The translations under genes were made by a program, and so were the position numbers. A stretch of 64,000 nt of DNA from Mytilus edulis (taxonomy: Eukaryota): assembly GCF_963676685.1 (NCBI RefSeq), contig NC_092348.1, forward strand, positions 19,654,001-19,718,000. Reading direction: 5' to 3'. This document shows positions 3,984 through 44,844 of the stretch, piece by piece. The notes beneath the pieces were generated by a model. The model was not told the origin of the DNA. It ran no database searches and saw only the letters and a list, made by a program, of their open reading frames with translations. Position 1 is the stretch's first letter; each line of letters opens with the position of its first letter.

Positions 3984-4085
3984 ATATCCTTTGCGATCAG
4001 GGAATTACTGTAAATCATACCCGACCGTGATCTGCAAAAAATTGGAAAGCACCAAGTTCAGTTAAACAAGTCCAACAATTTTTAA

Positions 4086-4717
4086 TTCAGTTTAATCATG
4101 TATATCTGTTATATAGTCATTTTATAAAATGTACTGTTTGCAAAACTATGTATTATTCTTGATAATAATGATGTTTTATCCCAGGCGGGTAACCCTGGCC
4201 TCACAACTTTTTGGAACTTTTGGTTCTCGGCGATCTTCAACTTGGTAGTTGTTATGGCTTTCTAACTTTTTACATCTGAGTATAGTTTTGTGTGGATGTA
4301 GCGCACGTCTGCTGTATAAAAATATTTTTTTACATGTTACCTTTGGATGGCTATTATTCGTTTGTTTCTCTGTTCTATATTTTCCCATTTATCTGTTTAT
4401 TTTTTGTAACCCTAGGCCTGTCGTGTAATGCTGTCATTTTAATGTTATATTTAACACTGCCATTAAAGCGGGCGGTTCCAGGTTCAACCCACCATTTTTG
4501 TTTTCATAAAATGCCCTGTACCAAGTCATTGAAAATGGCCATTGTTACATTATAGTTCGTTTCTGTTTGTGTTACGTTTCGGTGTTGTGTCTCTGTTGTT
4601 TCGTAGTTCTCTTATATTTGATGTTTCCCTCAGTTTTAGTTTGTAACCCGGATTTGTTTTTTTTCTCTATCGTTATATGAGTTTTGAACAGCGGTATACT
4701 ACTGTTGCCTTTATTTA
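4086..4717 (+). repeat. 5' pseudo-LTR (degenerate hammerhead module plus a common repeat tail)
   Basis: Direct repeat of 8406-9056. 4170-4360 is homologous to the hammerhead repeat at 31270-31460. The tail is homologous to 50533-50915(-). Confidence 0.8.
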
Positions 4718-4791
4718 TCACCACCGAACCGGAAGCTCTGCTGGTGGACAATTTGTGCCCGAGGATTCTACCAGTCCTGTAGCCTAACAGC

Positions 4792-7700
4792 ATGAAAACA
4801 AGTAGAATGAAAAATATTATACTGGATGACACGCCGCCCAGGATAAAAAGGTGTCAATCGGATGTTGTCAAGGAGACAACAAAATCGATTTTATCAGGTG
4901 TCCCAGGATCATTTTAAATGATGTAATGAAAATGACACATGTGCAGTCTTCTGAATCCTCATTGTACTATAAAAATTCTGACAAGTTTGTTTATATTCGA
5001 CCCTGTACTGTTCAACTTTCAAATATTTTAGATTTCGATGACAACCACCAATATTGCTCTATTTCCAAATGTAACCGTAAAAATTGTAAAACTTGTGATA
5101 TACTAATATCTGATACCTACTTTCTAAGTAATTTAACCATCAAAAGTTGCAATACACACAGTCATGAGGATTTGAATTGCACTGCTTCCAATATTGTGTA
5201 CGGTATTGAATGTACTCTTTGTGGATTGATCTACGTCGGGGAGACTCGACAAAGACTCAATTTTAGAATTAATGGTCATCGATCTAATGTAAATGATCCT
5301 AGTAACAACAAATTTCCCTACACGCATTTCAATCAGCCTGACCATTCTATTGTTTCAATGAAAGTCCGGATTATAGAGAAAATATATCATTCAACAAATG
5401 ACCCCATATTGAGTACACCATATAGTTTACAAAGAGAAAACTTTTGGATAAGAGAGCTGGGAACAGCCATTCCCTATGGATGCAATGACAAGATTGATGG
5501 TGTAGGTATTTTGTCTAGTCCAAGGTGTAGTACTGTCAATACATTACAATTATTTAATATTTCTGCTGAACGTAATAGAAGTCATGGTCACAGAAAATAT
5601 ATACCACCCACTATGCACACCGTGACAATGGATAGTCTGATAACGTATGTTCAAAAACCTTTAGGAATCCATCATATCAGAACTAAATTATACTCAATTC
5701 CATTGTCAAAACTTTTTTTATTATTTCAAAAGGCCCAAAATACTTCTGTTACTGATTCTCGTCCTGTTTTGTATAAATTAGTTGCAATAATAATGGACAT
5801 TGCTAACCATAGACTATTCAAACCAGTATCGACTACATCCAAAAATGAGGAAAAACGTAATTTTTTTAAGGTAGAATTTGCCAATAAAGGTTTAGATGCT
5901 GTAAAGATTAGCAATATTTTGCATCAGATATCTGTACAAAAAACTATACCTGATTACTTCAAAAATAAAGCTACACCTGTTATATCTAATATTTACACCA
6001 AGTCTATTCCATCCAAGATTTTCAACCACGAGAGGGTTTTAGAGGCCTTTAACCTCAAAGATGTGAAATCCAAGCCTCCGGATTGCTCATTAGCATCGTC
6101 ACAATACAATTATAGTCCAGCTAGGCCTGAAGAGACATGTATTGTCGAAATGCGCATCTGGTGCAAGAAAATTGGTACCGTAAATGTTATAAGTACTGGT
6201 GACCTTGGCATCGTTACTAATGAACAACTAAGAGAGTTGTTAACCAAGAGACCAAAATATAGAATTCCCTAGCCTATCAACTGGAAAAAGAACTTCAAGT
6301 TACTGATGGATGCAGTTGAGGACTATGCGAGAAAATGGGTAAAGTGCGAACCAGACGAACCAGAACTGGACACTTTGTCTGAATGGATCAAAGCTATTCC
6401 ATCGTGCATTCAGAAGCGCATTCAAAAGTTACGATGTACTATGAGCACAAGAGTTACTAATCCTTTCAAGAATCCAGATGTTATGGATGCTTTATCCTCT
6501 TTGCATGACAAATATGTCGTTTTTCCAGCAGATAAAGCCTCTAATAATATTTATTCATATGTAAAAACCATTATTTGCAATGTCTCACAACAGAGCTTGG
6601 AATAAAGAGAACAACTGGTAATCCTACATATTCCTTAACATCATTTATCAAGGACGAGATTTTACAAAATCCCAAATCTGTCCTTCTTTCTTTTGGTATC
6701 AACATCAAGGAAAACGAAGAAAATGTACCATCATTATACTGGATACCAAAACTACACAAAACTCCAAATAAAGAACAATACATAGCTGGATCGTCAAAAT
6801 GTACGACTAAACATCTTTCTGAAATACTGACTACTATTCCCTCTACAGTTAAAGATGGGCTTCAAAAATATTGTGATGAGATATATTCTACCAGTGGTGT
6901 TAACCAGATGTGGATAATCAAAAATTCGAAAGATCTACTGCTTAATCTTCGATCACAATCTTTGCAATTTTGCAGCAACATAAAGACTTTACACTACTAT
7001 TCCCCATGCTCAGTTGAAAGATCGACTGCACCATCTTATTAAACAGAGCCTTTTCTGTAAAAATGGGAATCGTAGATACAAATGTTTTGTTTTGGGTTAC
7101 AATACTTTATATTTTGTGAAGAACCAAAAGGGATCTACCAGAAATATACTGAAGATGATATTATCAAAATGCTGGACTTTTTGATCGACAATATATTTGT
7201 TGAGTTTGGAGGATTCATATTTCAACAGACAATCGGTATTCAAATGGGTACTAATTGTGCACCCCTACTAAACGATTTGTTTTTGTACTCGTATGAAGCA
7301 GAATTCATTCAAACCCTTCTAAAAGACAAACTATAATCTCACTTTCTGATATATTGATGATGTCCTGCCACTGAATAACCCATATTTCAGCCAAAACTTG
7401 CATCTCATATATCCCAGCGAACTTAAAAAATAAAATATACTACTGATACTAGAAGGACTGCTTCATGCCTTGATCTTTTTCTCAATATTGACACAGATGG
7501 ACGACTTCACACGAATATCTATGATAAATGGGAAGATTTCAACTTCCCAATTATCAATTTCCCATTTCTCAGCAGTAACATACCCTCTGCCCCTTCGTAT
7601 ACATACCTCTATTAATACGTTATTCTCGTGCATGTTCACATTATACGGACTTCATATACAGGAGTGTGCTCCTAACGAAGAAACTGCTCCAACAAAGTTT

Positions 7701-7818
7701 TGAGGAGGACAGACTAAAAATGACACTACGTATATTTTACGGACACCATCACGAATTGGTTGATCCATACGATGTATCTTTGTCCAAACTAACTGTGGAC
7801 ATTTGTACCACGTGTTAG
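4792..7818 (+). pseudogene. PLE GIY-YIG endonuclease + reverse transcriptase, disabled
   Basis: CNRKNCKTC and NIVYGIECTLCGLIYVGET..RINGHR..YTHFNQPDH..RENFWIRELGTAIPYGCN (GIY-YIG with Cys/His zinc ligands). RT: PADKASNN, SLYWIPKLHK, LYTTIPH, GIQMGTNCAPLL..LFLYSYE, YIDD. TAG at 6270-6272, frameshift ~6550, deletion of FDFST ~6988, TGA before YIDD. Start is approximate. Confidence 0.9.
6127..6164 (+). ncRNA. Type I minimal hammerhead core (5' stem-I strand missing) inserted in the PLE ORF
   Basis: CTGAAGA-GACA tgtat TGTC-GAAA-T GCGC A-TC^TGGTGC. Confidence 0.75.
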
Positions 7819-8405
7819 ATGGTGGTTTATCATTACGTCGTCTGATCTTTTTATCACCGAACGTGACTTATTCCCGACTGTGACTGTTTTGCTGAGTGTG
7901 AATTCGTATTGCTTTAAGACGTGGCGCGGTACTTATCCATCCCAAATTAATTTTGTTGGGTTTTGATGTTGTATTTGTTGTTGTCATCGGATTTTTTTCA
8001 AATGTTTTAACGTTTGTAGTTGTCAATCGTATTATTGTGTTGTATTGGGGATAACTACTCATCCAGTTCATTTGGTAGATTTAATTTTGGATCAACGAAA
8101 TTTACACTATGTATTTGGTTTGCAGTTTGATCAGAAGAAACAACCACAAAGCTAGATAATACCATTAATTATCCAATTACTGCTTCAATTAAATATTAAT
8201 CAGTATTATAATTTTCACTGTTATTAATATATTAAGTTAGATCAGTCATACAAATCTAATCTTGAATTTCATTCATATTCTCTTAATTTTCGGAACACAT
8301 TTTAGAAATTTAAATATGACGTCACTTTGGGAGTTGCATTGCATATGGCTAACAGGACTGTGGTTTTGTCATGTATTCGTTTTTTATTCTATAGCTGGTC
8401 ACCAC

Positions 8406-9056
8406 TTCAGTTTAATCATGTATATCTATTATATAGTCATTTTATAAAATGTACTGTTTGCAAAACTATGTATTATTCTTGATAACAATGATGTTTTTAT
8501 CCCAGGCGGATAACCCTGGCCTCACAACTTTTTGGAACTTTTGGTTCTCGGCGATCTTAAACTTGGTAGTTGTTATGGCTTTCTAACTTTTTACATCTGA
8601 GTATAGTTTTGTGTGGACGTAGCGCACGTCTGTTGTATAAAAATATTTTTTAACATGTTACCTTTGGATGGCTGTTATTCGTTTGTTTCTCTGTTGTATA
8701 TTTTCTCCCATTTATCTGGGTTTTTTTTCCCATTTATTTTTTGTAACCCTGTCGTGTAATGCTGTCATTTTAATGTTATAGTTAACACTGCCATTAAAGC
8801 GGGAGGTTTGGCATGCCACAAAACCAGGTTCAACCCACCATTTTTTTTTCATAAAATGCCCTGTCAGGAAAATGGTCATTGTTACATTATCAGTTCGTTT
8901 CTGTGTGTGGTACGTTTCGGTGTTGTGTCTCTGTTGTGTCGTAGTTCTCTTATATTTGATATGTTTCCCTCAGTTTTAGTTTGTAACCCGGAATTGTTTT
9001 TTTCTCTATCGATTTATGAATTTTGAACAGCGGTATACTGCTGTTGCCTTTATTTA
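8406..9056 (+). repeat. 3' pseudo-LTR
   Basis: Direct repeat of 4086-4717; both end ...CTGTTGCCTTTATTTA. Confidence 0.8.
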
Positions 9057-22802: not shown

Positions 22803-23090
22803 TAGCGGTACTAATGAAGGTAAACACAAAAAAGCATTTCGGACGCATGAAATTACAAAGTGCTCTTTTCATATATATGGCACTCGGTCAAATTTGAATA
22901 CTCTACTGATGAACTATTTATTATAAATAGTAATCTATCATCAGCTCTGTAGTTAGTGCTTCGGTGATCTGAATAATAATCTTTCTTAAATTTTCCTTTA
23001 GAATTTATATATTATCAAGAAACTAATGTACCAACTACTTTGGGTAAAGTGGATCTTAGATGGATTTGACTATTTTTGAAGGTAACTTTT
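22803..23090 (+). mobile_element. Decayed retrozyme-like monomer (hammerhead family 2)
   Basis: CTAATGAAGGTAAAC..AAAGCATTTCGGACGC followed by colinear homology to the reverse complement of ~42240-42510. Confidence 0.6.
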
Positions 23091-29399: not shown

Positions 29400-30821
29400 T
29401 TATTGGTCTACAGGACTCTCTGTCTTCTCTTCATTTATAGTTTGTGCTGAATTATCTATATCACTTGATGAACATTCACAACAACAACATTCTACTTGTT
29501 CGTTCTTTGACAAGATTTGCTTATTCTTTTCCAATGCTGTTTTGATTTCAGTGCCTTCGACAGATTTGGTTGTGTTATTTCCGTTAGCAGACACTAGCCT
29601 AAGTGTTCTTTCAGACAAAGTAGTCGAGACTTTTTTTATATTGTTCATCGTAGTAATTTCCGGATTAGAATACCTTCCGAGAAACAAAATAGTTTCACTA
29701 CTTATATCCCTTATCACAAATAAAAATGGGTGATCTGCGACAAAATTAAATGTAGAAGGCCTTGCGGATCGAAATAACATGAAAAATGACGTGACAGCAG
29801 CGGCGACACTACCTTCTTCGTTCACTTCAATAACACTTTCATGAAAAGCATCAGAAACATACAGATCTCCGTTCTGGTCACGTGATCGTACCATATGACT
29901 AAAATCTGCCTTTAATGCCTCGAATATTTCCGTTACTCCTAGTCCTTTTAGAATAGCCTTTAGGTCAATTTTTGCCTTAATTTTGAATTTCGGTAAAACT
30001 AGTTCTGTTGGTCTTGATTTTAATCTTTTGACGAGATTATAAAATGTAAGAGGGGACAGTTTCTTTTCCATTTCTGGTAAACCTTCTTTTTCATTCGGTA
30101 GAATGATTACCATTGAAATGTTATCCCCTTTGTATGGAAGTTCGACAGCTTTACAGTTAAGATCCATGTCGACCCCAGCTTTGAACGTACTTTTTTGCCA
30201 CATCATATTAGTCATCACCTTTTTGTTTTCGTTCATCCAGAAATTCCGCTTTGTTGTTTTCTTGGGATCAAATTGGCTTTTCCATTGCCCTTTGAAATAC
30301 ACCACATTTGTGAGTATCATAAAAGTTAATTGATCGAGCATACCGTCTGGTATAAACTCTTTAATTTTTCTTCCAGTGCGTCTTTCTATCCATCTATTGA
30401 TTTTATTTCGTGTATATGGTTCGTCTCCGAAATCCATCAGAGCAACTTGGCAACCATAATTTCGTCTCGCACTTCTTCTAAACTTGTATTTGAGTCTTTT
30501 AACTTGCCATTTCGCCACAAAAAATTGATTCGCGATTGAGAGCTGCATTCCGGGTGTATCACGTGCTTTTCGCAACAGATCATCATGCAATACTTTATAG
30601 TGGTGGTCAATGTCCCCAGTGGGAAGTCCTTTCTTGAATAAAACAGATTTGAGTTGGTTTCTAGACAAACCACTTGTTCCCATCATTAGAAGCATGAGTG
30701 AAGCAGCAATACTAAACGGAGATAGACAAACATTGTCTGGTTTATGTAAATCATTGTAGATAGAAAATGAAAAATCAGATAAACAAACGTTAAAACTTAT
30801 ATTAGCTGGAACTGAAGCCAT
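29400..30821 (-). CDS. Serpin (no signal peptide, clade-B-like), basic, P1-P1' Arg-Ser, with an 86-aa C-terminal extension
   Basis: NVCLSPFSI, NVVYFKGQW, ELPY, LPKF, hinge EEGSVAAAVT, signature FVADHPFLFVIR..LFLGR. Intact 473-aa ORF. Confidence 0.95.
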   Translation of the reverse strand: MASVPANISFNVCLSDFSFSIYNDLHKPDNVCLSPFSIAASLMLLMMGTSGLSRNQLKSVLFKKGLPTGDIDHHYKVLHDDLLRKARDTPGMQLSIANQFFVAKWQVKRLKYKFRRSARRNYGCQVALMDFGDEPYTRNKINRWIERRTGRKIKEFIPDGMLDQLTFMILTNVVYFKGQWKSQFDPKKTTKRNFWMNENKKVMTNMMWQKSTFKAGVDMDLNCKAVELPYKGDNISMVIILPNEKEGLPEMEKKLSPLTFYNLVKRLKSRPTELVLPKFKIKAKIDLKAILKGLGVTEIFEALKADFSHMVRSRDQNGDLYVSDAFHESVIEVNEEGSVAAAVTSFFMLFRSARPSTFNFVADHPFLFVIRDISSETILFLGRYSNPEITTMNNIKKVSTTLSERTLRLVSANGNNTTKSVEGTEIKTALEKNKQILSKNEQVECCCCECSSSDIDNSAQTINEEKTESPVDQ

Positions 30822-31381
30822 TGCTACAGTCTACGTCTACGTTAATAATGAATGTGTTATTTGAATAAATGAAAGGACATATTTAATGAAGCATCACTAA
30901 ATGGACTGTTGTTTATCGCAGAGGCGGGAATATTGGGTATATATATATATATTTTTCTGAGCAAGCTTTCTTGTTTTAGGAACGTATAATTTCTTTTCTT
31001 TTAATGAAAGTTACTTTGATCTTTCTGTCATTCTTTTCTAGATTAGAAATAGTGATTAATCTAACTCTGTGTTTTCTCTAATAAACAGTTGTAAATCGAT
31101 CATTATATAGCATTAGTGATTAAATCGATCATTTTATAGCATTAAACTTAAGATTTATGGTATTGTTTGCAACACCTGTTCCACTCCTCTGTATATGTTT
31201 GGTAAATATACATGACACATAAACATAAAATCTGTAGCTGACCGCAAGACATCTATGCTAAGGTTCAATAATACCTATTTCTGGTATAACATAGCCTTAT
31301 TTGGCATAACGTTTTGGAATGTTGAATCCTCAATGCTCTTCAACTTTGTATTTGTTTGGCTTTATAACTATTTTGATTTGA

Positions 31382-31426
31382 GCGTCACTGATGAGTCTTT
31401 ATGTAGACGAAACGTGCTTCTGGCGT
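31382..31426 (+). ncRNA. Type I hammerhead (family 1), core present, stem III mutated; within repeat 31270-31461
   Basis: GCGTCA CTGATGA GTCT ttatgt AGAC GAAA CGTGCT TC TGGCGT. Confidence 0.7.
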
Positions 31427-31663
31427 ATTAAATTATAATCCTGGTACCTTTGATAACTATTATAGCCTTCTGTGGTCATGTGCTTGGTTTAAAACGTGAT
31501 ATCTTTGGACTCCTCATTGACAATAACAAAACATTGACTTTCAATTTGAAAAATATTGCTTATCCAATAAGCACGCAGCTTTGTGCAAAAGAGTGAGAAC
31601 ATATTTCTTGAGCAGGTGACGTTTTACCAATATTTATCAAAGGTACCAGGATTATAATTTGAT

Positions 31664-31704
31664 ACGCCAGACGCGCGTTTTGTCTACATAAGACTCGTCA
31701 GTGA
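31664..31704 (-). ncRNA. Type I hammerhead (family 1), G12->A, probably inactive; inverted relative to the 31382 copy
   Basis: Minus strand TCA CTGACGA GTCT tatgt AGAC AAAA CGCGCG TC TGGCGT. Confidence 0.65.
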
Positions 31705-34084
31705 GTTTTTTGTTGTTTTTTAACTATGGAGAATGCATGTAAATCATGTACATGTAACTAAAACCGTTAAACACGATACGTATCTGTTTTTTTTAAATTG
31801 CCAAGAGTGTAGAAAGCTATCATTAAACTTTTGTTATTTTCAATTTGTTTTGTAAAATAATGACAAAATTTAAAAAAATTAAATGCATCGGTTGGCACAA
31901 AAAAAAAAAGGAAATCATGAGTTCTTTTACATGAGGTTTCATCTTTGTATAACTAAAACATCAACATACAATATATTTCAACTTCTTACTACGCATTCAT
32001 TCTTAGTAGTTCAGTGTTCATTCATAGTTTTCAGCTAACCCATTTTGCAACTTTCATTTTCAAAAATTGTGGCTTTGGATTTCAGAACATTCTCTACCAC
32101 AGAAAACTAGAAACATCATCTTTTAAAAAAAGAACATAAATAATGTATAGAAATACCTATTTGATTATTGAAACATACTTATTTCGTATACCACGAACGA
32201 AGGGAAGTTACTGCGGTCTGAAGCGAACTGAAAATGAATCTAACTGTTTCTTTGACTTCAATTTACCGTCTTTATTTTGTCTCCCACCTTTTAAATTATT
32301 GTATATTGGTACACTTTGTATATATAATAAATGGATAGATATAAAATCTTATATACGTGTAAAACCACATTTTTCGAACGATTTGAGGTCATTTACTTGA
32401 GTGCAATGCCACCACTGTCCTTAATGACATGTATTTGCGGATTATGTTTTTAGACGATAACACAGATGTGAACGTGTTTCCAAATTTATTATGCAACAAG
32501 TAAGTTTAGTCAAACCGTGCGAATTGATTTACATGTTTCGTATGTTTATTTGAAAAATTAACACCATTAAGTATTTATTACAAATGTAAACAACCTGTTT
32601 TCAGAAGAAATAAAAAAAAAACAACATCGAGTTATATGGATTTTTTATCATTGTAAGTAGAGAAAAAAATAACGCCTCATTTCATAGCATTTCTATTTCA
32701 CATTAAGGCTTAATTTTTTCATTGGTAGATTTTACATGTTTTGTTATCTGAACCATGATTTGTTCAGTGTTGTTAGTATTGTATGACTACTAGAAATGTA
32801 AGCAACCTGTTTTTAGAAGAAAAACAACATTCAATTCTATGGATTTTCGTCATAGTCAGTATTGAAAAGATAACGTAGAATATTTCGTCGTTTTTCTATT
32901 TTACATTATACTTTTTCCTATATACATGACTTGATTTAATAGATTTTACTATCTGATTTGATCTATGGGTTGTAAGTTGTTATTAGTCTTTTATTGTATT
33001 GATATTTTATTGGAGGGGTTAGACGTTGGTTGTTATGGTGTATGGAAATTATTGGTCTGTTATACTGGCCAATGTTTTTATTTGAAGATTCATATAATCA
33101 ATCTTTGTATTTTCTAACGGAACCATTGCTATTGAAATTTTGAAGATCCCACACTTTAAAGCGACGAAAGAGAAGGCATATACGGTACAAAAATCAGTTT
33201 GAAGTTGAACATGCTTTTTATATCACTGACTGTTCTTCATATTTCACAAATACATTTGTCAAATATTTGAAATTGAAAGGGACAGTAAATTAACAATGTT
33301 ACAGTTTTTTTTAACAAATAATTTTCCATACAACTAAGCCATTCTGAATTTTACCATACGGTTAGTGCCTGTTCACCTTCAAAATATATAACGCATTTAT
33401 ACAACGTCAACGGTACATATTTGACTGCAAAGGTGACGCATCTTTTAAATTTATAACGATATATTTGTATGGAAATCGTTGAGATATACGCCCCGTATTT
33501 TGTTAAAATAAGTGATAAATGTGCTTGCAGGTTTTTTTTTAAATTGATATTTTTCTAAACTATTGACCAAATTTTCAAAATCATGTTCTTGAAACAATCT
33601 GGAAAACGGTACATGTTTTAAATTTCTAAGGGTCCAATGATTGTATTACTCTCTGAAACACAATCATCTATTGTCGGTGATTGGTAGATTATCTTTTCAT
33701 GATTCATAATACACAGTACTTGATCAAACAAAATGAAAACAATACGTTAAATAATTTCATGCGTTCGAAGCGCTTTTCAACATAGGAATTTATGAAAATG
33801 AGAGGTATAAGCCACAAAAACAATAAAATACCAATAGTTACATTGAAGTCAAAATACGGTCTTCCACAAGTTTATTAAAGATATGTCAAACTCGCCAATA
33901 ATTTAGAAAAGATGGCATTAAACTATTATCCTTTCAACAAATTTAATTGTTCATAACAATAAGTTCATTTTTCCCGTATATACTGAAATGCCAATTATTT
34001 CTATCGTTGACTTTATTTTAAGTAGCCTATTTTACATCATAGGTTTAAACTAATCCAACATTGTATCTTTGAATGTAGACAAAC

Positions 34085-34245
34085 TTATCATAGATGCCAG
34101 GATCAAGATTTTATATTTGCGCCAGACGCGCGTTTTGTTTACAAAAGACTCATCTGTGACGTTCGAATAAAAACATGCTAAAAACCCAAATGAGATATGA
34201 AGTTGAAGAGCATTGAGGACAAACATTCCTTAAAGTTTTGCTAAA
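34085..34245 (-). repeat. Decayed family-1 hammerhead repeat
   Basis: GCGCCAGACGCGCGTTTTGTTTACAAAAGACTCATCTGTGACG on +, colinear with 11161-11335. Confidence 0.65.
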
Positions 34246-35185
34246 GGATTTGGAGGGATAACATCTATCATGAAAAAAGGATTATAACACATAATACCTG
34301 ATTGAAACAAAGGAATCAATGATCACCATCTTTCAATCATTCTTTTATACAATTTCTATCTTCTTTTCTTTAAGACAATCCGTTTGGAAACTTTAAGAGT
34401 TTTGATTCTTCAAAATCCATGTACTGAACGATCTAATAAAAAGCAAATCGGCCCATATCAGTAGGAGTTATTAAGTTTAATGATATTATAACATCTTTTT
34501 CTTGATATTACAGACCTTTGTAGTAAAATATGTGATAATGGGTCTGCCATTATTTTTTGTTGTTGCATGATTCTTAGGCAGACAGCTACTTAAATACAAA
34601 CTACAATTGCATTGAATCCTGACGTAATATCACACTTCTTTCTTCTTCACTTAATCAATTGTCAATGTAACGAATTAAGTTCTCCGGATTGTCAAGTGGC
34701 CACTGTTATAAAAAATATATATCTAAATATAACAAACAAAAGTAAAGTAAATTCAACATAAATGAAATAATGAAATGAATACATGCAAATTTAACTGAAT
34801 TAACACACACAAAACAGAACTAAATATAATGTTATGACATTAATAAAATGAAACTAAACAATTACAGTTAGCACACCTCCATCAACTCTTCCCGGTAAAG
34901 GTTGAACGTTGCATGTACTGTAAAATAACTTTGGGTTGTTACCCTTGAGTTTCTTTTATATATAACGGACAGAAAATAACTATTTTCACACATTTTTGGT
35001 CGATTCTAAATTGATGAAAAGAACAAAAGATTTGATACTTTTACTGCCATCATAACTTCAAATGAGCAATGACGTCTTGAAACTGCTCGGACTGCTCGAT
35101 TCGTTAAACATATATTCAAACGGACTTCTTTATTGGTTGTTGTTTTGTTCATATGATGAACATAATTTGGGGAATTTATATTTTT

Positions 35186-35349
35186 TTATTTCAGTGATTG
35201 AACTTTCATTTACCTTCAAGAATCAGTTATGGTACCTTTAGCGGTCCAATATTTTTTAAGAAAGAGGAGGGCCATTCTTAAAATATTGGACAGTTAAAGG
35301 TGACATGATGGTTTCTTGCAGGTAAATGGTAGTCCAATCACTGAAATAA
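35186..35349. mobile_element. Palindromic (foldback) element ~165 bp upstream of serpin 2
   Basis: TTATTTCAGTGATTG..CATTTACCT..GTCCAATATTTT / AAAATATTGGAC..AGGTAAATG..CAATCACTGAAATAA. Confidence 0.7.
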
Positions 35350-35929
35350 GAACGGGTAAAACAATAGAATGACGTCACAACAATGTTTTAAGATGTAAAG
35401 AGACATGGCTAGTTATTAAAAAACCTAAAAGAAGCCCAGATGGGTGTGTAAATAAACTTGTGTGTATGACTCGTCTCAATATCATTTCCAAAATGAATAT
35501 GTCAGTAGCGACGTTAAAGTGACTTCGGAAGTGACATTTAAGCATATAATTGTAAGAGTAGATTGAACGATTCATTATATAAATGTTACATAAAATTATT
35601 ATGCTTGAATGATTTAATTTTTATTTTTATTGATGTATACCTTCAATTTCAAGTGCCAAATAATGACTCTTGTCAAAGCTCCTAATTTTTACATGGTGCA
35701 ATATTTAATTGTATAACAAAAAAATATTATAACAAGGTACGAAGTGTGAAATGTAAATTAGCAATCATGAGAGAAATCTTTATATTATTCCAATTCTAGT
35801 ATTTAATTATTCTTAAAATGAGAATATTAGAAACAACACATGTAAGCACACTGTCGAGTGACTGCAACATGATTTTTTCTTGGTTGTATAAAATTTACAA
35901 CATATTTACAGAAATATTTTGTAAAGGAA

Positions 35930-36075
35930 GTATGTTGAACCGAATTACCCATTTAAGCAAAAACTTTGCAGTATTGTAATCGAAACTCTCTCATGTTAAC
36001 ACATCATTTACATTTCTGTACATATATAAATGATGTTTAGTAAGATTTATATCAGTGTTATATCTTTTACTGCAG
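35930..36075 (+). other. Predicted short 5' intron of serpin 2 (equivalents 44695-44842 and 52718-52865)
   Basis: Conserved AAGGAA|GTATGT donor and YAG acceptor two nt before the conserved ATG in three paralogues; 146-148 nt. Confidence 0.6.
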
Positions 36076-36077
36076 TG

Positions 36078-37220
36078 ATGGCTACGTTGGTAGATATTCC
36101 TGTAGACTTTGAACAAAGTTTAATTGAATTCTCGACATCTTTGTATCAAGGATTGGACAAAACAGAGAGTGTTTGCTTGTCACCATATAGCATTACAGCG
36201 GCGTTGCTGTTGGTGATGATTGGAGCAAATGGACGATCAAAAGAACAAATTTCCTCTGCTCTTTTTCAAAATAGCTTATATTCAGAAGAGCAACAGTTGA
36301 AGTTTTACAAGTCACTTCATAGTCAACTTACTCAAAGAGCGGGTGTCAATGTTAGTTTTGCTAGTGCAAATAGGCTATTTGTTAGCGACCATTTCACAGT
36401 GTTTCAAAAGGTTCAAGAAAATGCAAAACGATATTTTGGAGCCGATATAAGTGTAAAGGACTTTATACAATCTAAAGCATCTGCATACGAGATGAATAGT
36501 TGGGTGTCAGAACAGACAAACGGTAAAATAGAGGATTTAATAAAAGAGGATTGGTTAAACATAAACACTGTAATGTTCATAATTAATGCTGTATATTTTA
36601 AAGCCACCTGGAAGAAGCAATTTCCTCCCAAAAACACACAGAAAGAAAATTTTTACCTTCCTAATAACAAAACGATCGAAGTTGAAATGATGAACAACGA
36701 AATGATTTTTCCATATTTTCGAGGTATGGACTTCTCTGCCGTAGCATTACCCTTCAAGGGAGGTAATTTTGATATGGTCTTCATTTTACCCAATGAAAAA
36801 CACAAGCTTCCAAAAATAGAAGCAAAGATAACCCCAAAGTTCTTTTCGGATATTTCTGCTGGATTTTTTAAAACGTTTTTAAGTATCTCTATTCCAAAAT
36901 TTAAGTTACAAACAGAATTTGATTTAACAAAAGAGTTACCTAAACTTGGAGTAGAAGATATTTTTGACCAGGCTCAAGCTAATTTCTCAAATCTTATTAA
37001 TGAGAAGAGAGGAGGTTTGTACGTCGATGTTGCTGTACATAAAACCGTCTTCAATGTGAACGAAGCAGGCGTAGAGGGAGCTGCAGCCACAGCAATTGGA
37101 TGGCCTTTAAGATCTATACCAAGACTGTTCAAGGCAAATAAACCTTTCTTGTTTTATGTGAGAGATATAAAATCGGGTCTTGTTTTGTTTATTGGACGAT
37201 TCCATCCACAAGTCAATTGA
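36078..37220 (+). CDS. Serpin paralogue 2 (380 aa from the conserved Met), RCL EAGVEGAAATAIGWPLR-SIP
   Basis: Intact ORF with serpin motifs (SPYSI, NAVYFKATW, ALPF, IPKF, FKANKPFLFYVRD..LFIGR). AATAAA at 37305-37310. Confidence 0.95.
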   Translation: MATLVDIPVDFEQSLIEFSTSLYQGLDKTESVCLSPYSITAALLLVMIGANGRSKEQISSALFQNSLYSEEQQLKFYKSLHSQLTQRAGVNVSFASANRLFVSDHFTVFQKVQENAKRYFGADISVKDFIQSKASAYEMNSWVSEQTNGKIEDLIKEDWLNINTVMFIINAVYFKATWKKQFPPKNTQKENFYLPNNKTIEVEMMNNEMIFPYFRGMDFSAVALPFKGGNFDMVFILPNEKHKLPKIEAKITPKFFSDISAGFFKTFLSISIPKFKLQTEFDLTKELPKLGVEDIFDQAQANFSNLINEKRGGLYVDVAVHKTVFNVNEAGVEGAAATAIGWPLRSIPRLFKANKPFLFYVRDIKSGLVLFIGRFHPQVN

Positions 37221-38667
37221 TTTATGACCATTTTTTTCAAAAAGTAGTACAATACTTTTTTTTAAAACAGAGCGAGCAATTGTAGATCTTTATTAATTGT
37301 ATTAAATAAATTGTTCAAATCAAAAGTGTTTTGATATTATTCATTTTAATGGCATTTAGAGATTGTTTCTGACGTTGAACCATGTTTCTGTATTGTTAAG
37401 CTTAATGTATTCTACTAAAAAAATTGAGGTGTAATTGTCTTGAATTAAAAGAGGTTATACATGTCTTAAATAGAACAACTTAGTATGTGACAAAATATAT
37501 GAAATTGATAGTATATCTATAAAACTTTTAATCAAAGTACCAATTGACAGATATTTTTAAGAACACATTTGAATTTCACCTCTGTTGTCTTTAGTTTTTT
37601 ATGTTATGTTATGTAATGTTTTGTTTTCAGTTTTCTATATTAGCCAAATGGAACCAAGAAAAAAATGAAGAAATTGTTTTCTTTTTTGCTAAAAATCCAC
37701 AGAAAACTGTGCAAACCCCTTATATCAAATTTTATAATCAAATACAAAGGGAAAGATTTGAGTTATTGCCGTAATGAGAGGAGAACAACACATGAAAACG
37801 TTAAAAAAAAATGTATTTGTTTTAAGCTATGTCACAGTGATCCAGTGGCAAATATTACTTGCATATCATGTCGAAAGTACCTTATTGTGACATGCATGAA
37901 AATGGATATATAAAAAGCAAATTAGTTGTATAATTAATGTGCAACCTATAAAAGTTATGTATATCCTATAACATAATAACAGTGTTTTGAACAAATTAAG
38001 GTGTAAGGTAAACTGGTTTGCTGAATATCATAAATTGAAACAATCCATTCAAAAAATTGGATTGAGATAGTTAAACAAGAAAATTCTGTCCATAGTATAG
38101 TAAATGTCAAGAGAAATAAGATCACATGGAAAGATCGTTATTTTAAGATAACATTAATTTCTAAAAAAAAAAATGTTATATGACTCTCTAGTAAATAGTA
38201 AAAAAAGAACCGTCAATAGGGATAAACAGGTGGCTGAAAATTCTACCAATGCAAGAAGCAAAAAATGTGAATTCATTATATAACTTTATTTTCAAATATT
38301 TAACTGAAAATGAATTAGAAATATACAGATGAAAACGAATACAGTTTATTGTACCAACCAAAAAGTTTTTATTACAATGGAAAATAACTAATAATAGTTT
38401 GTGTAATTTTTGTAACATAGAAGAAGACTATGCTCATTAATTTTTCAATTGTTCTTATTGACAAGATTTTGGCAACAAATATACGACCTTTTAAAAAAAA
38501 TGTAATTTAGATTTTTCAAAAAAATTAAAACACCTGCTATTTGGATACAAAATTACAAACAACAAGTATTACTCAATAAATTTTTTGATTACAATTAATA
38601 TATAAGTCGTACTATGTACCTGAGAAGAAAACAAAAAAAACATAGACGTCTACAGAATTTTTGTTAA

Positions 38668-39350
38668 AGGGGCACTAGCTACGAGATATATAAAAAATCT
38701 AAAGTTTGATTTTTTTTTCTTCAATCAATAAAGAAAGTGAACTAGTGAAATAACAATTCGCTTTTTGCAGCCAAAAAGGTTCAATTTTGTCAAATTACGC
38801 TAAGAAACATTGATAATTAGTTATTCACTTGCAAGTGAATGAGTTGACCTCTTTAAATCCGTATTTATGTGAACTTCAATTTAACCCCTAGCTAGAGATT
38901 GACAACGCATGCATTGTACGTGTACTGATTATTCAAAGAAAAAGAATGTCAACAATGAAAGTGAAACTACGGTAAATCATTTGATTACTAATTCGATGCA
39001 CATAAAATCATTCTTTTATGGTTAAATGCAATGAGAAACATCTATTTTTAATCTATAAAATCAAATCAAACAGATCTATAAAAATCCAATTGCACGTGTT
39101 GTTTTAATCTATTCATATCTTTATTTATGTTTACATCGCTTATATTGTCATCTGAGGTCAAATCGATAGTTAATAAGATGGCGTGTGGACTAAAATACAC
39201 ACGAAACGAACCTATATATTATCTACCCCATGCTCTGTAAACTGTTTATTTTTGCTTTTGAAAGTTTGGATAAATGTTTTACATTGTTATAAAACAAATA
39301 TGAGAATTTGAGTCAAATCGGTGACCATGAATTTGACAGCTAGTGCCCCT
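38668..39350. mobile_element. Kolobok-like non-autonomous DNA transposon, 683 bp
   Basis: Perfect 13-bp TIR AGGGGCACTAGCT / AGCTAGTGCCCCT with TTAA TSD (38664-38667, 39351-39354). Confidence 0.85.
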
Positions 39351-40982
39351 TTAATGAATACACCAAGAGAGTAGATACCAATATAAATGGACATAGGACA
39401 ATCAGTCTAATGTTACTTACAATTAATAGGAACATAATCAATGCATATTTTTTTTTAGTTATTGTTAATATAGTGTTTTGTAAACATAATGTATGGCAAT
39501 TACTTTAATCATAAAAGACTGTAAAATATAAAATTATGGATGTTTTGTCAACAAATTGGTGCATTTTTTTTGGGGTAGATTTGGCAGAAAGTTGCCAATA
39601 GAGAAATACTAGTCATTGTAATTTACCCTGAAATCCCCTTTTGTTTAGGTTCTGTTTGTCAATAAATATTTTATATGAATATTTTATGATAAAATAGTCC
39701 TTTTTTATTATTAAACCCCAACTATTTTACATGTATTGAGGGTACTTATATCATATTACATATTCCAGAAACTAAAATTTCTATGCTCTTACTAATCTGG
39801 ATGTAATTTTGAGAAATGAGTTATTTCCCCTTTTTGAAAATCTTCGTTTAGGAGATGGCAAAAACATTAGCAGCAATAACTGTCCAACAGACAACTTGAT
39901 TATACTATTTCTGGAGCACTATTCCTTGTTTGACAGCGTTACAACAACCATCATTGCAATATTCAACAGAAAGTGACATAATGAATTATGAATGTTCCTT
40001 GTCAATTTTTGAAACAATTTCCTGACATAATTTTTGACATTTATTACACTGAAATATTGAAAACTTTTAACATCATGTGTATGAAACACAAGGCAAACTC
40101 TAGGCAGAAATTGACTTGATATATTTGGCAACCATCATCTGAAACATATTGAATAGAACGCAGCAAAAGAAAAACCACTTGTGAAGTTCCAGATGTGATC
40201 AATGTACATAACTTTTGAGAAACTGTCAAGGAGCAAGAGAATAGCCATAACATCAGACCGGAAACTTAACATCGACCAGGTTTTGTTCACAAAAATGCTG
40301 GATATGTTTTGCCAGTATGAACACGTAAGATTTTATATATATATATATATGTTATCTTCATCTTCCCCAAATGAAATATTCTGTAAATGCCCTATAGAAC
40401 TATAGGCGGTTTCCCCTGCCTGTCGTGAGGGTACATGTTCAGCACAGAGTGATCAGAATGGATACATTATACAAGGGTCACAGATTGGTACTCTCTGCCT
40501 CTACTTTCGAGTGCACCCCAGTATTTAAAACTGTGGAAAAAGCAAGACAAGAAGTCTTAGATTTAGGACCTGACAATTTTAACAGGGATTTACACCAAAG
40601 TAGAAAGGTAAAGGTACATTTACACCAAGCTTGGCTTGCAATGTATAAACCCATGTGGTAAATGTAGGAACTAACGAGAATGGAGATGTTACACTTTTAA
40701 TACTTGAAGAGCGGTTGGGGAGGCACATTTACACCAAAGCTTACCTTATTGTATAAATCCTTAGGGTAACTGTACAGCCTAGTGAGGCAGAACAAGTTCT
40801 AGTAACACCTTACAAAAATTTCAAAATATATTTCCTCAAATTCAAACTTGGTTAATAATATGGTTTACCGTTGTATCAAATTAATTAAAATTAATCAAAT
40901 TCATTCATAAAATAATCATTAAATGGTCATTAAGAAAATTATTACCTTAATTAATACCTTATAACTAGCAGCTCTGTACCTA

Positions 40983-41450
40983 GTGTCTTTTTGTTGTTGG
41001 GATGTACAAGTTCCCAGGCACGTCCACTTGTATTTTTGTCCATCTAATGAGTTAAGCCTTTTTCAACTGATATTTATAGTTCGTTCTTTTGTTGTACTGT
41101 TATACCACTTTCCCAGGTTAGGGGTAAGAGTAGGATCCCGCTAACATGTTAAACCCCGCCAGATTATGTATGTATGCACCTCTCCCAGGCCAGATGCCTG
41201 TCATTCAGTGGTTGTCGTTTGTTAATGTGTTACAAATTTTTTTTCGTTCCCTTTTTCTAACATTAATAAGGCCGTTAGTTTTCTCGTTTGAATTGTTTTA
41301 CATTGTCATTTCGGGGTCTTTTATAGCTGACTATGCGGTATGGGCTTTCATCAATGGTGAAGGCTGTACGGTGACCTATAGTTGTTAATTTTGGTGTCAT
41401 TTTGGTTTCTTGTGGAGAGTTGTTTCATTAGCTTTTATACTACACCTTTC
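40983..41450 (-). repeat. Copy of the 14990-15500 interspersed repeat
   Basis: Reverse-complement colinearity (TATAGCTGACTATGCGGTATGGGCTTT and flanks). Confidence 0.75.
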
Positions 41451-42094
41451 TTTTTTTATAAATAATATTATTGTTTAAATATTATCATATTGATTAATTT
41501 ACACTTGCTGATTATCTCTCATTATTTCAACTAAATTTATATAATTATGTATCTACAATATAATGGAATGCCAAAGTGCCAACACTGTTCTAATTTTAAT
41601 TACTTGGTCTGTCTCATTGGGCTCTACAGTTATCCGAAGGGTTTATTCTAACAAGTGTTTGATAATCAAATGATGTGAATTTGTAATCATATGATACAAT
41701 ATTGGTTAAACTGCCAAACAAAGATAAAATAATAACTGAAGTGTACAGCAATTTTTTTCCGAAAAAAAGCAAATTATTTGTTTCCCATTTTAACCCAAAA
41801 ATTGGGTTCCTTAATCTTGTTTTCTGTATTTTACTGTTATTTAGAAAATTTCGATCAAAGTCAATGGACATTTGTAACACATGCATTTAACTATTTATTT
41901 TCCAGCTATTTCCAGGAATTGTAGACACAAACTTTTGACTCAACAGCACATTGAACAAGAACAAGATTTTATAGCTGAAAAACGGATTTAGAATATATGT
42001 TAAAGAAAATATTTATTCATGCTTTAATATGAATTATAGTCTTTTAATTTCACCAATGAAAACTTACATATAAAATAAGTAATGTAAACAAAAC

Positions 42095-42674
42095 ATTGAA
42101 TAATTGTATGCGTCCGAAGCGCTTTTCTGAATTTACCTTCATTAGAAACGCTCAAAGCAAGCCAAAAATTTGAAATCCGAGGATGTATAAGTACCAAAAC
42201 AGTCGAAGAGCTGTATAACAAAAATACATAAAACAAATAGACAAATTCATCTGAGGTCAACTCTACCTGAGGGAGTTGAAACCTTAGTTTCTTTGTAATT
42301 TCAAAATTTATTTATAAACAGACATTTTAAGAAATGTTAGTTATAAATCATGTCAGTACCGAAGTTCTGACTACTGAGCTGATGATACCCTCGGGAACTG
42401 ATAGTCCACCAGCAGAGGTATCGACCCAGTAATGTAAAAAAATTGAAAGCAACACGTTTAATAATTGTATGTGTCCGAAGCGATTTTCTGGATTAAACTT
42501 CATCAGTAGCGCTCAAAGCCAAACATTTGAAATCCAAGGCTGTACAAAGAAATAGCCACCTTCATCTAAGTTCAAATTTGCCTGAGGAAGTTGACAAATT
42601 AGTGTCTTTATAATTTAAAAATTTATAAACGGACAATTTAAGAAAGATTTGTTAAAAGTCATGTCAGTACCGAA
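42095..42674 (-). mobile_element. Tandem non-LTR retrozyme-like array, 361-nt period, two type I hammerheads (42110-42153, 42471-42514)
   Basis: Minus strand GAGCGCTA CTGATGA agtttaatcca GAAA ATCGCT TC^GGACAC and GAGCGTTT CTAATGA aggtaaattca GAAA AGCGCT TC^GGACGC. The flanking sequence repeats in tandem. Confidence 0.8.
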
Positions 42675-44844
42675 CAATCTGTTTTCAGAGAAAAAAAAAC
42701 ATTTAGTTTTATGGATTATTCTTTATTGTCAGTATTGATAAGATTACTTACGTAGAACTTTTCATAGCTACACTTTTTTTTTATTCATGGCTCGATGCAT
42801 TAGATTTTGCAATCTGAACTATGGTATGGTCGTTGCTTTTAGTCATCGTTTGCATGATTAATTTATTCAAAAGTTTGTGGGTGTTGTGGTGTATGGAAAT
42901 TCTTTGTCTGTTATACTAGCCTATGTTGTTTTGGGTAGATTCATAACTTCCACCCTTACAGTACTTTCTCAAGTTAGCATTGCTAATGAAAGTAAAATAA
43001 GCAATGAAGAGGAAACATTTGATATTCACACAATAAAAAAGATGCCAGATAAGGCATTTACAACATATTCATCTTTTTGATGTTAAACGTGCTTTCTTAC
43101 AGACTTTTCTACATATTTCAAAAACTGATTTGTCATTTTTTTTAAATAGAAAGGTGCATTGAATTAGCAATATCACGATTTTATCAACAAATAATGTGTA
43201 ATTAAACTCATACATTCTGAACTAAAACATGCATAAAGTGACAGTTTACCATATTTGCCCCACAAAAAAAGCATGTGCACAACTTTAACGGCACACAGTC
43301 GTTTACATAAAAGAGGTACGAAAGATACCAAAGGGACAGTCAAACTCATAAATCGAAAATAAACTGACAACGCCATGGCTAAAAATGAAAAAGACAAACA
43401 GACAAACAATAGTACACATGACACAACATAGAAAACTAAAATATAAACAACACGAACCCCATAGAAAACTAAAATATAAACAACACGAACCCCATTAAAA
43501 ACTAGGGGTGATCTCAGGTGCTCTGGAAGTGCATAATTAGTTGTGCATAAGTTGCACATTGTCACAATTAATAACATTTCTTGTATTATTGTATGTACAA
43601 CGTTTTGATATGATAATTTGATAATATGTATAGAATGCATGTTTGATAAGTGATACATGTGCTTGACATTTGTTTTTATATTATTATGTCTTTAAAACCT
43701 AGTCCACAGATTGGATCCGTATTATTTTCTTCATACATGATGATTTTCAATATCGTACAATCGTCTACTTATCCAATTATGTGTATCTTGTTTTACTTGC
43801 TAGTACAAAAACAACAGTATTGAAACCATAATGTGATCAGAGTTATGTCGCTTTGTCAACTATATGATAATATTAACAAATACGAAAATATGAATTAAAA
43901 AGTAATATATTAAGGGGCCAAATAACATCCTTCATAATACATTAGGTATTCAGATATCAGCATTTCATTTTGGAATTGTGTCCTTTATATTTGCATTAGA
44001 GCTTCAGACTCCTTCTATTTAGCATGTGTAGTCTTACATACATATATATGAACAAATGCCTTACCCCAAAAATAATTTGTTATAACAAAGAGGTGTTAAT
44101 GACTACAAATTTAAAAAAGAAAAGTGACAAAAGATTTTAAATGTTCAAAGCTTGCAAATCTGGTTAAAGATATGAATCAAGTTAACAAACAACAACTTAA
44201 GAATTTGAATGAACTTTAAAAGGAACCGGATTTGTAAAAACATTTTACTGTCAAAAAAGCCTCAATTTGTCAGGGTTTTTTTTGACGTTATAATGATACC
44301 AGACGTGACATTTTTTAACCATATGGTCTATATTATGTATAACGATTCATTTTACCATGACTGTTACAGTTTTGAATGCTTGAATTAATTTTCTACGTAT
44401 GCTTCTGCTATTTAAGATGCAAGAAATCACTTATCATACCTCATCATTTTGTTATGATGGATGTCTCTCTTTCAATAGTCAGTGACAACGACATCAAAAT
44501 CTGGAGCAGAAATACAATGAACTATAATGTAAAAAAGGGATCAGTATCATAATCAATATCATTTTCCAATTGAATACTCAAACATCGAAAAGAAAACAAT
44601 ATCATGTCTGCATACTGTCGAGTGACTACAACAATACAGTGCCTGCGTTAAATTCAATGTAACAACAGATTTTCAAAAACACTTTGTAAAGGAAGTATGT
44701 TGATCTCAATTACCCATTCGAGCCCAAACTTGCATCATTGTAATCAGGGAATTTGCATGTTAACATATCTAAGCATTTCTCTTCACATATAAAGAATGTT
44801 TTCTCTTGGAAGATTCATCTCAAATACTATCTTAAACTGTAGAG

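Follow-up and report, generated by a model that had tools for sequence, protein, structure and literature searches.

A covarying leader hairpin common to Naiad-type PLEs and hammerhead retrozymes of Mytilus edulis as a putative cis tag for reverse transcription

The window, by which we mean the whole 64,000-nt stretch of Mytilus edulis DNA analysed here, carries a decayed Naiad-type PLE on its forward strand. The element opens with a 5′ pseudo-LTR (4086-4717), a partial upstream copy of its own 3′ end that stops 5 nt before Pa, the basal helix of the RNA hairpin described below. The direct repeats at 4086-4717 and 8406-9056 are 88-98% identical to each other. Between them lies the coding region (4792-8405), comprising an N-terminal GIY-YIG domain followed by a reverse transcriptase (RT), which is frameshifted and broken into several ORF pieces; Pfam recognizes the GIY-YIG domain at residues 115-204 of the ORF at 4851-6272. 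The PLE 3′ terminal region (8406-9056) completes an element body of 4339 bp (4718-9056), and its insertion end at ...TTTATTTA (9056) is the point that directly precedes the hairpin in tandem copies. The characters expected of a Naiad are all present, namely the N-terminal GIY-YIG in the window ORF, an RVT_1 domain at residues 640-849 of the intact 995-aa ORF of PLE family D, a CxC in the endonuclease-RT linker (seen as DCTCASS, with C426 and C428 invariant in a 14-sequence alignment), pseudo-LTRs derived from partial tandem copies, and a body of 3.4-4.4 kb. No Rfam hammerhead was found at E≤10 in window positions 4000-5200, or at E≤1 in the Naiad PLEs at loci L061, L062 and L071, in agreement with Craig et al. 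2021 (PMC8557442), who described Naiads as being without canonical hammerhead ribozymes.

The first 65 nt of the element body (4718-4782, forward strand) form the leader hairpin of this E-type PLE, in keeping with a preliminary description of the sequence that had placed a motif between the 5′ pseudo-LTR and the PLE ORF. The copy is decayed, with three non-pairs in the helices Pa and Pb, and at lowest energy it departs from the canonical fold (z −0.47), which is retained by an intact E copy elsewhere in the genome (L027:1483-1547, reverse strand). GAAGCT/GGATTC, earlier read as a change that keeps the pairing, is actually a mutated form of the GGAAUC/GAUUCU found in intact copies such as L027. 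A short second hairpin (GC...GC) and an ATG follow the leader hairpin (4782-4794); this ATG, at 4792-4794, is the ORF start in intact copies, and the frame that it opens in the window copy hits a stop.

On the reverse strand, about 1.7 units of a type C hammerhead retrozyme occupy positions 42078-42677. The array is truncated at its 5′ end within the second hairpin, and its hammerhead cores are decayed near 42473-42513 and 42100-42150, where Rfam detects no hammerhead. Its leader hairpin (42371-42435, reverse strand) takes the canonical fold at −23.3 kcal/mol (z −2.4), against −14.7 (z −0.6) for the opposite strand. The adjoining second hairpin has a UUCG loop and is accompanied by the kept ATG of the retrozyme unit (42349-42371, reverse strand); its stem varies among retrozyme families A, B and C yet stays paired.

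A covariance model (R1) built from an alignment of six families, run over the window with filters off, returned just these two hairpins, at 4718-4782 on the forward strand (60.9 bits, E 1e-14) and at 42371-42435 on the reverse strand (81.8 bits, E 2e-20), and the second of these matches confirms the earlier report of the same block in the retrozyme from 42371 onward. The shared block CTGCTGGTGGAC-N8-CCCGAGG likewise occurs exactly twice, at 4738-4764 on the forward strand and 42389-42415 on the reverse strand, and in none of 100 shuffles. A third copy had been proposed at 22881-22952 on the forward strand. Pairwise alignment to the reverse-strand unit at 42200-42600 establishes that this is indeed a homologous, old retrozyme copy with alignable flanks, but what is left there is a decayed relic whose core has mutated away and to which R1 is blind (E>5). 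The covariation CTGATG/CATCAG that had been noted in it, at 22906/22939, comes down to a single G-to-A change in a dead copy.

The block is modelled as an irregular nested RNA hairpin of about 60 nt on the sense strand. Going up from the base, Pa (7 bp) is followed by a one-base gap, Pb (6 bp), CU/AG, UGG/CCG and GGACN/NGUCC. The invariant core is the local pairing of CUGCUGGUGGAC with GUCCCCGAG (CU/AG, UGG/CCG, GGAC/GUCC); the 5′ strand of the hairpin has A, GC and U as bulges, and on the 3′ side a 4-nt linker leads from Pb to Pa. Folded singly, sequences from families A, B, C, D, E, F, G and I adopt this same nested hairpin as their lowest-energy structure; the z-scores run from −2.4 to −4.9 for D, E, F, I and the window retrozyme copy of family C, but reach only −1.2 for G. 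RNAalifold returns the same 23 pairs. In alignment A8, whose nine sequences were fitted to the model so that the counts lean towards it, 95.2% of the cells are paired and 12 pairs have changed on both sides, which was equalled in 0 of 500 shuffles. Sliding the pairing partners as a control lowers the pairing to 36-50%. The covariation sample spans some 9-10 families, of which J (L083) and H (L086) are poor matches; A8 was used for the counts in place of the MAFFT alignments A2 and A3, which misplaced an insertion in family F.

Variation among the families follows the helices. Pa occurs as ACUGGG/CCCAGU, ACCGGA/UCCGGU and ACCAAG/CUUGGU, and Pb as GAUGCC/GGUAUC, GAUGUC/GACAUC, GGAAUC/GAUUCU and GGUGAC/GUUACC, while the upper stem of family G has changed from C-G to A-U. 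In family F (L071:4428-4513, reverse strand), which R1 misaligns and which was therefore judged by its own fold, a perfect 23-nt extra hairpin stands between Pb and the core, the upper stem is shortened, and the otherwise bulged U is now part of a U-A pair. The two helices of the preliminary description that nest, ACTGGG/CTCAGT and GATACC/GGTATC, are both present and covary across families, which confirms this part of that description. G-U pairs and folding energies place the structure on the sense strand of the ORF and the hammerhead. A hammerhead on the opposite strand, drawn from CUGAUGA...GAAAC in the window copy, was also considered and rejected: most genomic copies read CUGGUGA, helix I is impossible, and the G-U pairs and energies oppose it.

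The preliminary description knew of three copies only. In the 1.37-Gb genome we found ~15,300 matches to the motif at up to 2 mismatches, compared with 2 for a control pattern, and many of them are spaced 350-356 nt apart. Three hammerhead retrozyme families (A, B and C) carry the hairpin module, and in intact units of family A a type I hammerhead lies on the same strand as the motif, 47 nt upstream of it. Two units of L009, spaced by 355 nt, match the Rfam model Hammerhead_1 with 30.1 and 26.1 bits (E 1e-3), below its gathering score of 34. L009 thus combines a type I hammerhead with short tandem repeats (~170-400 nt), as retrozymes do, while the core of the window copy is decayed. With their 350-356-nt tandem units and type I hammerhead, families A, B and C are, judged by sequence, the mussel retrozymes of Cervera & de la Pena 2020 (PMC7229834). 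The consensus of the abundant retrozyme circRNAs cloned from M. galloprovincialis gonad, given in the supplement of that work (PMC7229834), includes the module and provides a further upper-stem variant, GGAGA/UUUCC.

In no fewer than three Naiad-type PLE families (D, E and F), the whole 5′ leader up to the start codon consists of this hairpin and the small second one. In intact copies of these families it starts 2-5 nt past the end of the pseudo-LTR and extends to the start codon of the ORF. Family D (L062, L068) has a 995-aa ORF with a weak RVT_1 match at residues 640-849 and a tandem period of 3370 bp; in the intact relatives of family E (L027, L061) a conserved ATG a few bases after the motif opens the ORF, and in family F (L071) it opens a GIY-YIG/RT ORF. 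Queries of the genome with distant proteins, aimed at divergent Naiads, recovered mainly D-family copies and one new family, F. Dozens of D-family copies retain uninterrupted frames of ~1000 aa in the 44-50 candidates scored of ~30,000-44,000 first-look candidates, a count that would indicate very recent activity on a large scale.

Tandem mini-units that have the module and are devoid of a hammerhead are also present, with units of 279 nt repeated 11 times at L063, 129-137 nt at L064 and 201 nt at L065. In each of them the leader hairpin is joined to a few bases of ORF and to the terminal 45-60 nt of a PLE. These mini-arrays are natural minimal non-autonomous derivatives of Naiads. Beyond the mussel, a metagenome scan with a Naiad protein alignment located the module in relatives with 65% (L094) and 54% (L079) identity to family D, and weak versions of it in relatives with 47% (L083) and 40% (L086) identity. 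The core was not found in the more distant Naiads, at 31-47% identity, among these metagenome relatives, and it therefore appears to be clade-specific.

We then consider where insertions end, numbering each unit from the first base of Pa as position 1. Family A arrays have their 3′ end at positions 346-355 of 355 in 22 of 29 cases (P 1e-28), and all six family B arrays end at 346-349 of 351. The 3′ ends of D-family PLE copies lie in the ...CTCTTTTATTA stretch, 2-10 nt before Pa, in 11 of 11; the window PLE ends at 9056 (...TTTATTTA), and the window retrozyme array at ~42079, exactly where the next hairpin would be expected to start. No 3′ end falls within the hairpin among the mapped copies of A, B and D and the two window elements. 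The 5′ ends of retrozyme arrays are scattered, as they are under 5′ truncation. They are enriched at positions 5-19, in the 5′ strand of the hairpin (7 of 29 family A arrays, P 2e-4), a figure open to ascertainment bias, since selection of the loci relied on the conserved core. Five of these seven arrays are one or two whole units long, and 5′ ends of this kind may be the footprint of an RT that stopped there. In these seven arrays (L011, L014, L016, L026, L037, L057 and L058) the 5′ end falls at GGTCGATG or CTGCTGG, and family C arrays also have ends within the hairpin 5′ strand (L018, L044).

From the observed structure, covariation, position, retention in derivatives and insertion boundaries, we infer that the hairpin is probably a cis RNA tag through which the Naiad RT binds its RNA and initiates copying, and which retrozymes have hijacked. 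It is present both in autonomous elements (D, E, F, G and I) and in derivatives (A, B, C and the mini-arrays), and the 12 compensatory pairs attest to selection on it. The preliminary description had likewise favoured a cis element for recruitment of the PLE RT, and this putative function is the best supported one: every class of non-autonomous derivative keeps the hairpin, and insertions end beside it. Its proposed link between a Naiad-type PLE as helper and the retrozymes as parasites is also strengthened, as the hairpin is common to PLEs with an N-terminal GIY-YIG and to hammerhead retrozymes.

In the mechanism that we envisage, Naiads and their parasites would be transcribed as multimers from tandem copies, or, for retrozymes, the RNA would alternatively be circularised after hammerhead cleavage. 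The Naiad protein would bind the leader hairpin of the downstream unit on tandem or circular RNA and begin cDNA synthesis 3-12 nt before the hairpin, within an AU-rich stretch, with nicked AT-rich target DNA as the primer; copying would then run backwards through one or more units. With such an internal start, each insertion would end just before a hairpin, and in full-length copies a partial upstream copy, the pseudo-LTR, would stand ahead of the opening hairpin. The hairpin and the ~45-60-nt 3′ end would then suffice to mobilise non-coding derivatives, and circular retrozyme RNAs, which have no 3′ end, could be copied. More tentatively, the hairpin may act as an internal-initiation signal at which the RT stays anchored, starts a few bases upstream on circular or tandem RNA, and copies whole laps. 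If this is true, it would explain how a telomerase-related enzyme replicates circular retrozyme RNAs and how PLE pseudo-LTRs arise, Naiads lacking hammerheads could drive hammerhead retrozymes, and the arrays of one or two laps that stop in the hairpin 5′ strand would be the footprint of the anchored enzyme. Part of the evidence for a tag can be read differently: the same boundaries would be expected from a multimeric RNA that is cleaved or terminates shortly before the hairpin, with priming from the 3′ end so created, and the kept AUG and the site right before the start codon fit a role in translation as well.

That role, improbable in our estimate, would be a structured leader by which ribosomes are recruited to, or positioned on, AUGs inside a multimeric PLE RNA that may be uncapped, with the retrozymes inheriting it passively. 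In D, E, F, G and I the hairpin accounts for the whole 5′ UTR, ending a few nucleotides short of the ORF start codon, the small hairpin always stands directly before the AUG, and even the retrozymes retain that AUG. However, retrozymes and mini-arrays, which have no ORF, keep the helices by compensatory changes and reach thousands of copies, which argues for a function needed by the derivatives themselves, and insertion ends beside the hairpin are left unexplained by translation. A DNA-level internal promoter or initiator, with transcription beginning at the first base of each unit and the core as a factor-binding site, would serve the non-autonomous copies too, since they also need a promoter. 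It would fit a 27-nt core that is invariant across families whose proteins are merely 54-65% identical, a stretch, GGGTCGATGCC, that resembles a Pol III B box, and the promoters of Penelope and Chlamys near the pseudo-LTR/5′UTR (PMC8557442). We regard it as unlikely, because the 12 compensatory pairs and the strand-specific G-U pairs point to selection on RNA pairing, the B-box-like stretch is not conserved in E, G and I, and PLE copies have pseudo-LTRs upstream, so that their templates start upstream of the hairpin; a promoter could still be a second function of the same sequence. As for the B box itself, GGGTCGATGCC (module positions 5-15 in families A-D) is one base off the consensus GGTTCGANNCC, and given its loss in E, G and I the resemblance is probably a coincidence.

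Two further alternatives concern the structure rather than its use, and both had been raised in the preliminary description. One of them joins CTGGTG and CATCAG into a helix that crosses Pb. In the RNA, CUGGUG can be drawn paired with the CACCAG linker, as a pseudoknot or a two-state switch; the strands are fully complementary in A, C and E (6-7 bp including G-U), the lowest-energy fold of the damaged window PLE copy has this pairing, and changes in its 3′ strand are mainly C-to-U, by which G-U pairs are kept. Yet the crossing helix is 79.5% paired, compared with 94-96% for the other helices, none of its pairs has changed on both sides, and three of five vary by breaking alone. Mismatches occur in F, G, I and J and also in D, which among the intact PLE families is the most abundant. 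The 5′ strand of the crossing helix does not vary and is already taken by the local UGG/CCG and GGAC/GUCC pairs, themselves backed by compensatory changes in families F and G, and the final base of the helix clashes with the seventh pair of Pa, which covaries (U-G, C-G or U-A). An H-type pseudoknot calls for two crossing helices that are each supported across homologues, and only one set is; on these counts the pseudoknot appears unsupported and, like a switch, is unlikely, while the crossing pairing might form as an alternative conformation in families A, C and E. The other alternative, a new ribozyme that cleaves itself at its 5′ border, in the manner of the HDV-like ribozymes of R2, and releases RNA of unit length with a 3′ end to prime the RT, is the least likely of all. 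The module sits at the exact 5′ end of the unit with insertion ends just upstream, it has an invariant core with conserved bulges, and Naiads are without hammerheads (PMC8557442), all of which would suit such an activity. It is countered by the plain hairpin, which has none of the nested double pseudoknot of HDV-like ribozymes, by insertion ends that span ~10 nt and not one bond, by the sequence kept upstream of the hairpin in PLE copies, and by the working hammerhead that retrozymes have of their own 47 nt upstream. Moreover, none of the Rfam 15 self-cleaving ribozymes (hammerhead, HDV-like, twister, twister-sister, pistol, hatchet, hairpin) overlaps the module, at E≤10 in window positions 4000-5200 and 41800-43200 and at E≤1 in L009, L006, L029, L061, L062 and L071, and Rfam at gathering score yields nothing relevant over the whole window. 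We also tried to map the motif onto an HDV-like topology, taking Pb for P1, the crossing helix for P2 and the GAC hairpin for P3, and discarded it: P4 and J4/2 are missing, P3 and P1 are separated by six bases too many, and nothing matches in Rfam.

A tag recognised by the RT has precedents in other retroelements. LINEs and SINEs share stem-loops, and the R2 protein binds the 3′UTR and 5′ pseudoknot RNAs of R2. As in those systems, the RNA proposed here would be a structured element recognised in cis by an RT and copied by parasites; their tags lie at the RNA 3′ end and are copied first, whereas the Naiad tag would lie downstream of the start on a multimeric or circular template and be skipped in the first unit. 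The PLE RT is the sister of TERT, and, much as with the template boundary element of telomerase RNA, a structured RNA beside the copied stretch would set where copying starts. The likeness to the telomerase RNA pseudoknot suggested in the preliminary description is not supported, as the crossing helix is without covariation and there is no similarity of sequence or fold, nor a repeated short template, so the comparison is an analogy only.

The closest parallel comes from the purified Poseidon PLE of Frangieh et al. 2024 (PMC11167929), in which cleavage and extension depend on an RNA segment at the pseudo-LTR/ORF junction, reverse transcription begins inside a multimeric RNA, beside a stem-loop and at a site not homologous to the target, and the genomic ends of copies coincide with the start sites. 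Both are tandem PLEs, and in both the key RNA would be at the pseudo-LTR/ORF junction, its role in the Naiad being deduced. Poseidon nevertheless belongs to another clade, with a C-terminal endonuclease and a hammerhead, in contrast to the hammerhead-less Naiad with its N-terminal GIY-YIG; no sequence similarity between the two is known. The Poseidon start is ~111-118 nt inside the ORF, and the start proposed for Naiads is upstream of the leader, which counts against the tag reading insofar as the analogy is one of principle, not of position.

That retrozymes are parasites of PLEs has been proposed before. Cervera & de la Pena (PMC7229834), in describing the mussel non-LTR retrozymes, put forward PLEs or other autonomous elements in general as helpers, with no particular helper named and no description of the hairpin. 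A preprint by Li, Clavereau & Pollet (2026; 10.64898/2026.07.22.740005) treats retrozymes as non-autonomous PLE derivatives on the basis of similarity to PLE termini, and lends sequence support to this for hammerhead-bearing PLEs of Xenopus. Their elements are Neptune/Poseidon pseudo-LTRs with hammerheads, while the helper suggested here is a Naiad without one, and the shared part here is a structured 5′ leader together with the 3′ terminus. A full-text literature search for the core sequence returned unrelated primers only, and no description of the hairpin was found in it. What appears to be new is the insertion-boundary evidence for initiation next to the hairpin, together with the counts that speak against a pseudoknot, the metagenome relatives, and the match to published circRNAs.

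The autonomous element that mobilises animal retrozymes has so far been a proposal. The covarying RNA element ties the abundant circRNA retrozymes of mussels to specific Naiad families, and the insertion boundaries point to where copying starts. The minimal cis requirement of Naiad-driven mobilisation would be the hairpin and the ~45-60-nt 3′ end. A short RNA and a protein family are thereby at hand that can be tested directly for binding and internal initiation; no new class of ribozyme or pseudoknot is added.

Two observations on the termini and leaders of these elements are worth recording. A comparison of the 3′ regions of L062, L061, L079 and the window (8997-9056) with a family A retrozyme unit (L009) shows that PLE families D, E, G and J have, 45-55 nt before their 3′ end, a TTTATGAGTTT box which aligns with the CTGATGAGTTTT half of the retrozyme hammerhead; families A, B, D and E have a GGTAYC motif ~30 nt from the end. 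The Naiad 3′ end may be homologous to the retrozyme hammerhead. In addition, a distant Naiad clade (31-33% identity; L148, L151, L154 and L156) has another conserved leader 100-60 nt upstream of the ORF ATG, consisting of a GAGG-UUU-CCUC hairpin and then a covarying hairpin, GNUACC-NAA-GGUANC, which occurs as GCUACC/GGUAGU, GAUACC/GGUAUC and GGCACC/GGUGCC. L086 has the first part of this leader in common with that clade, and structured leaders may be general in Naiads.
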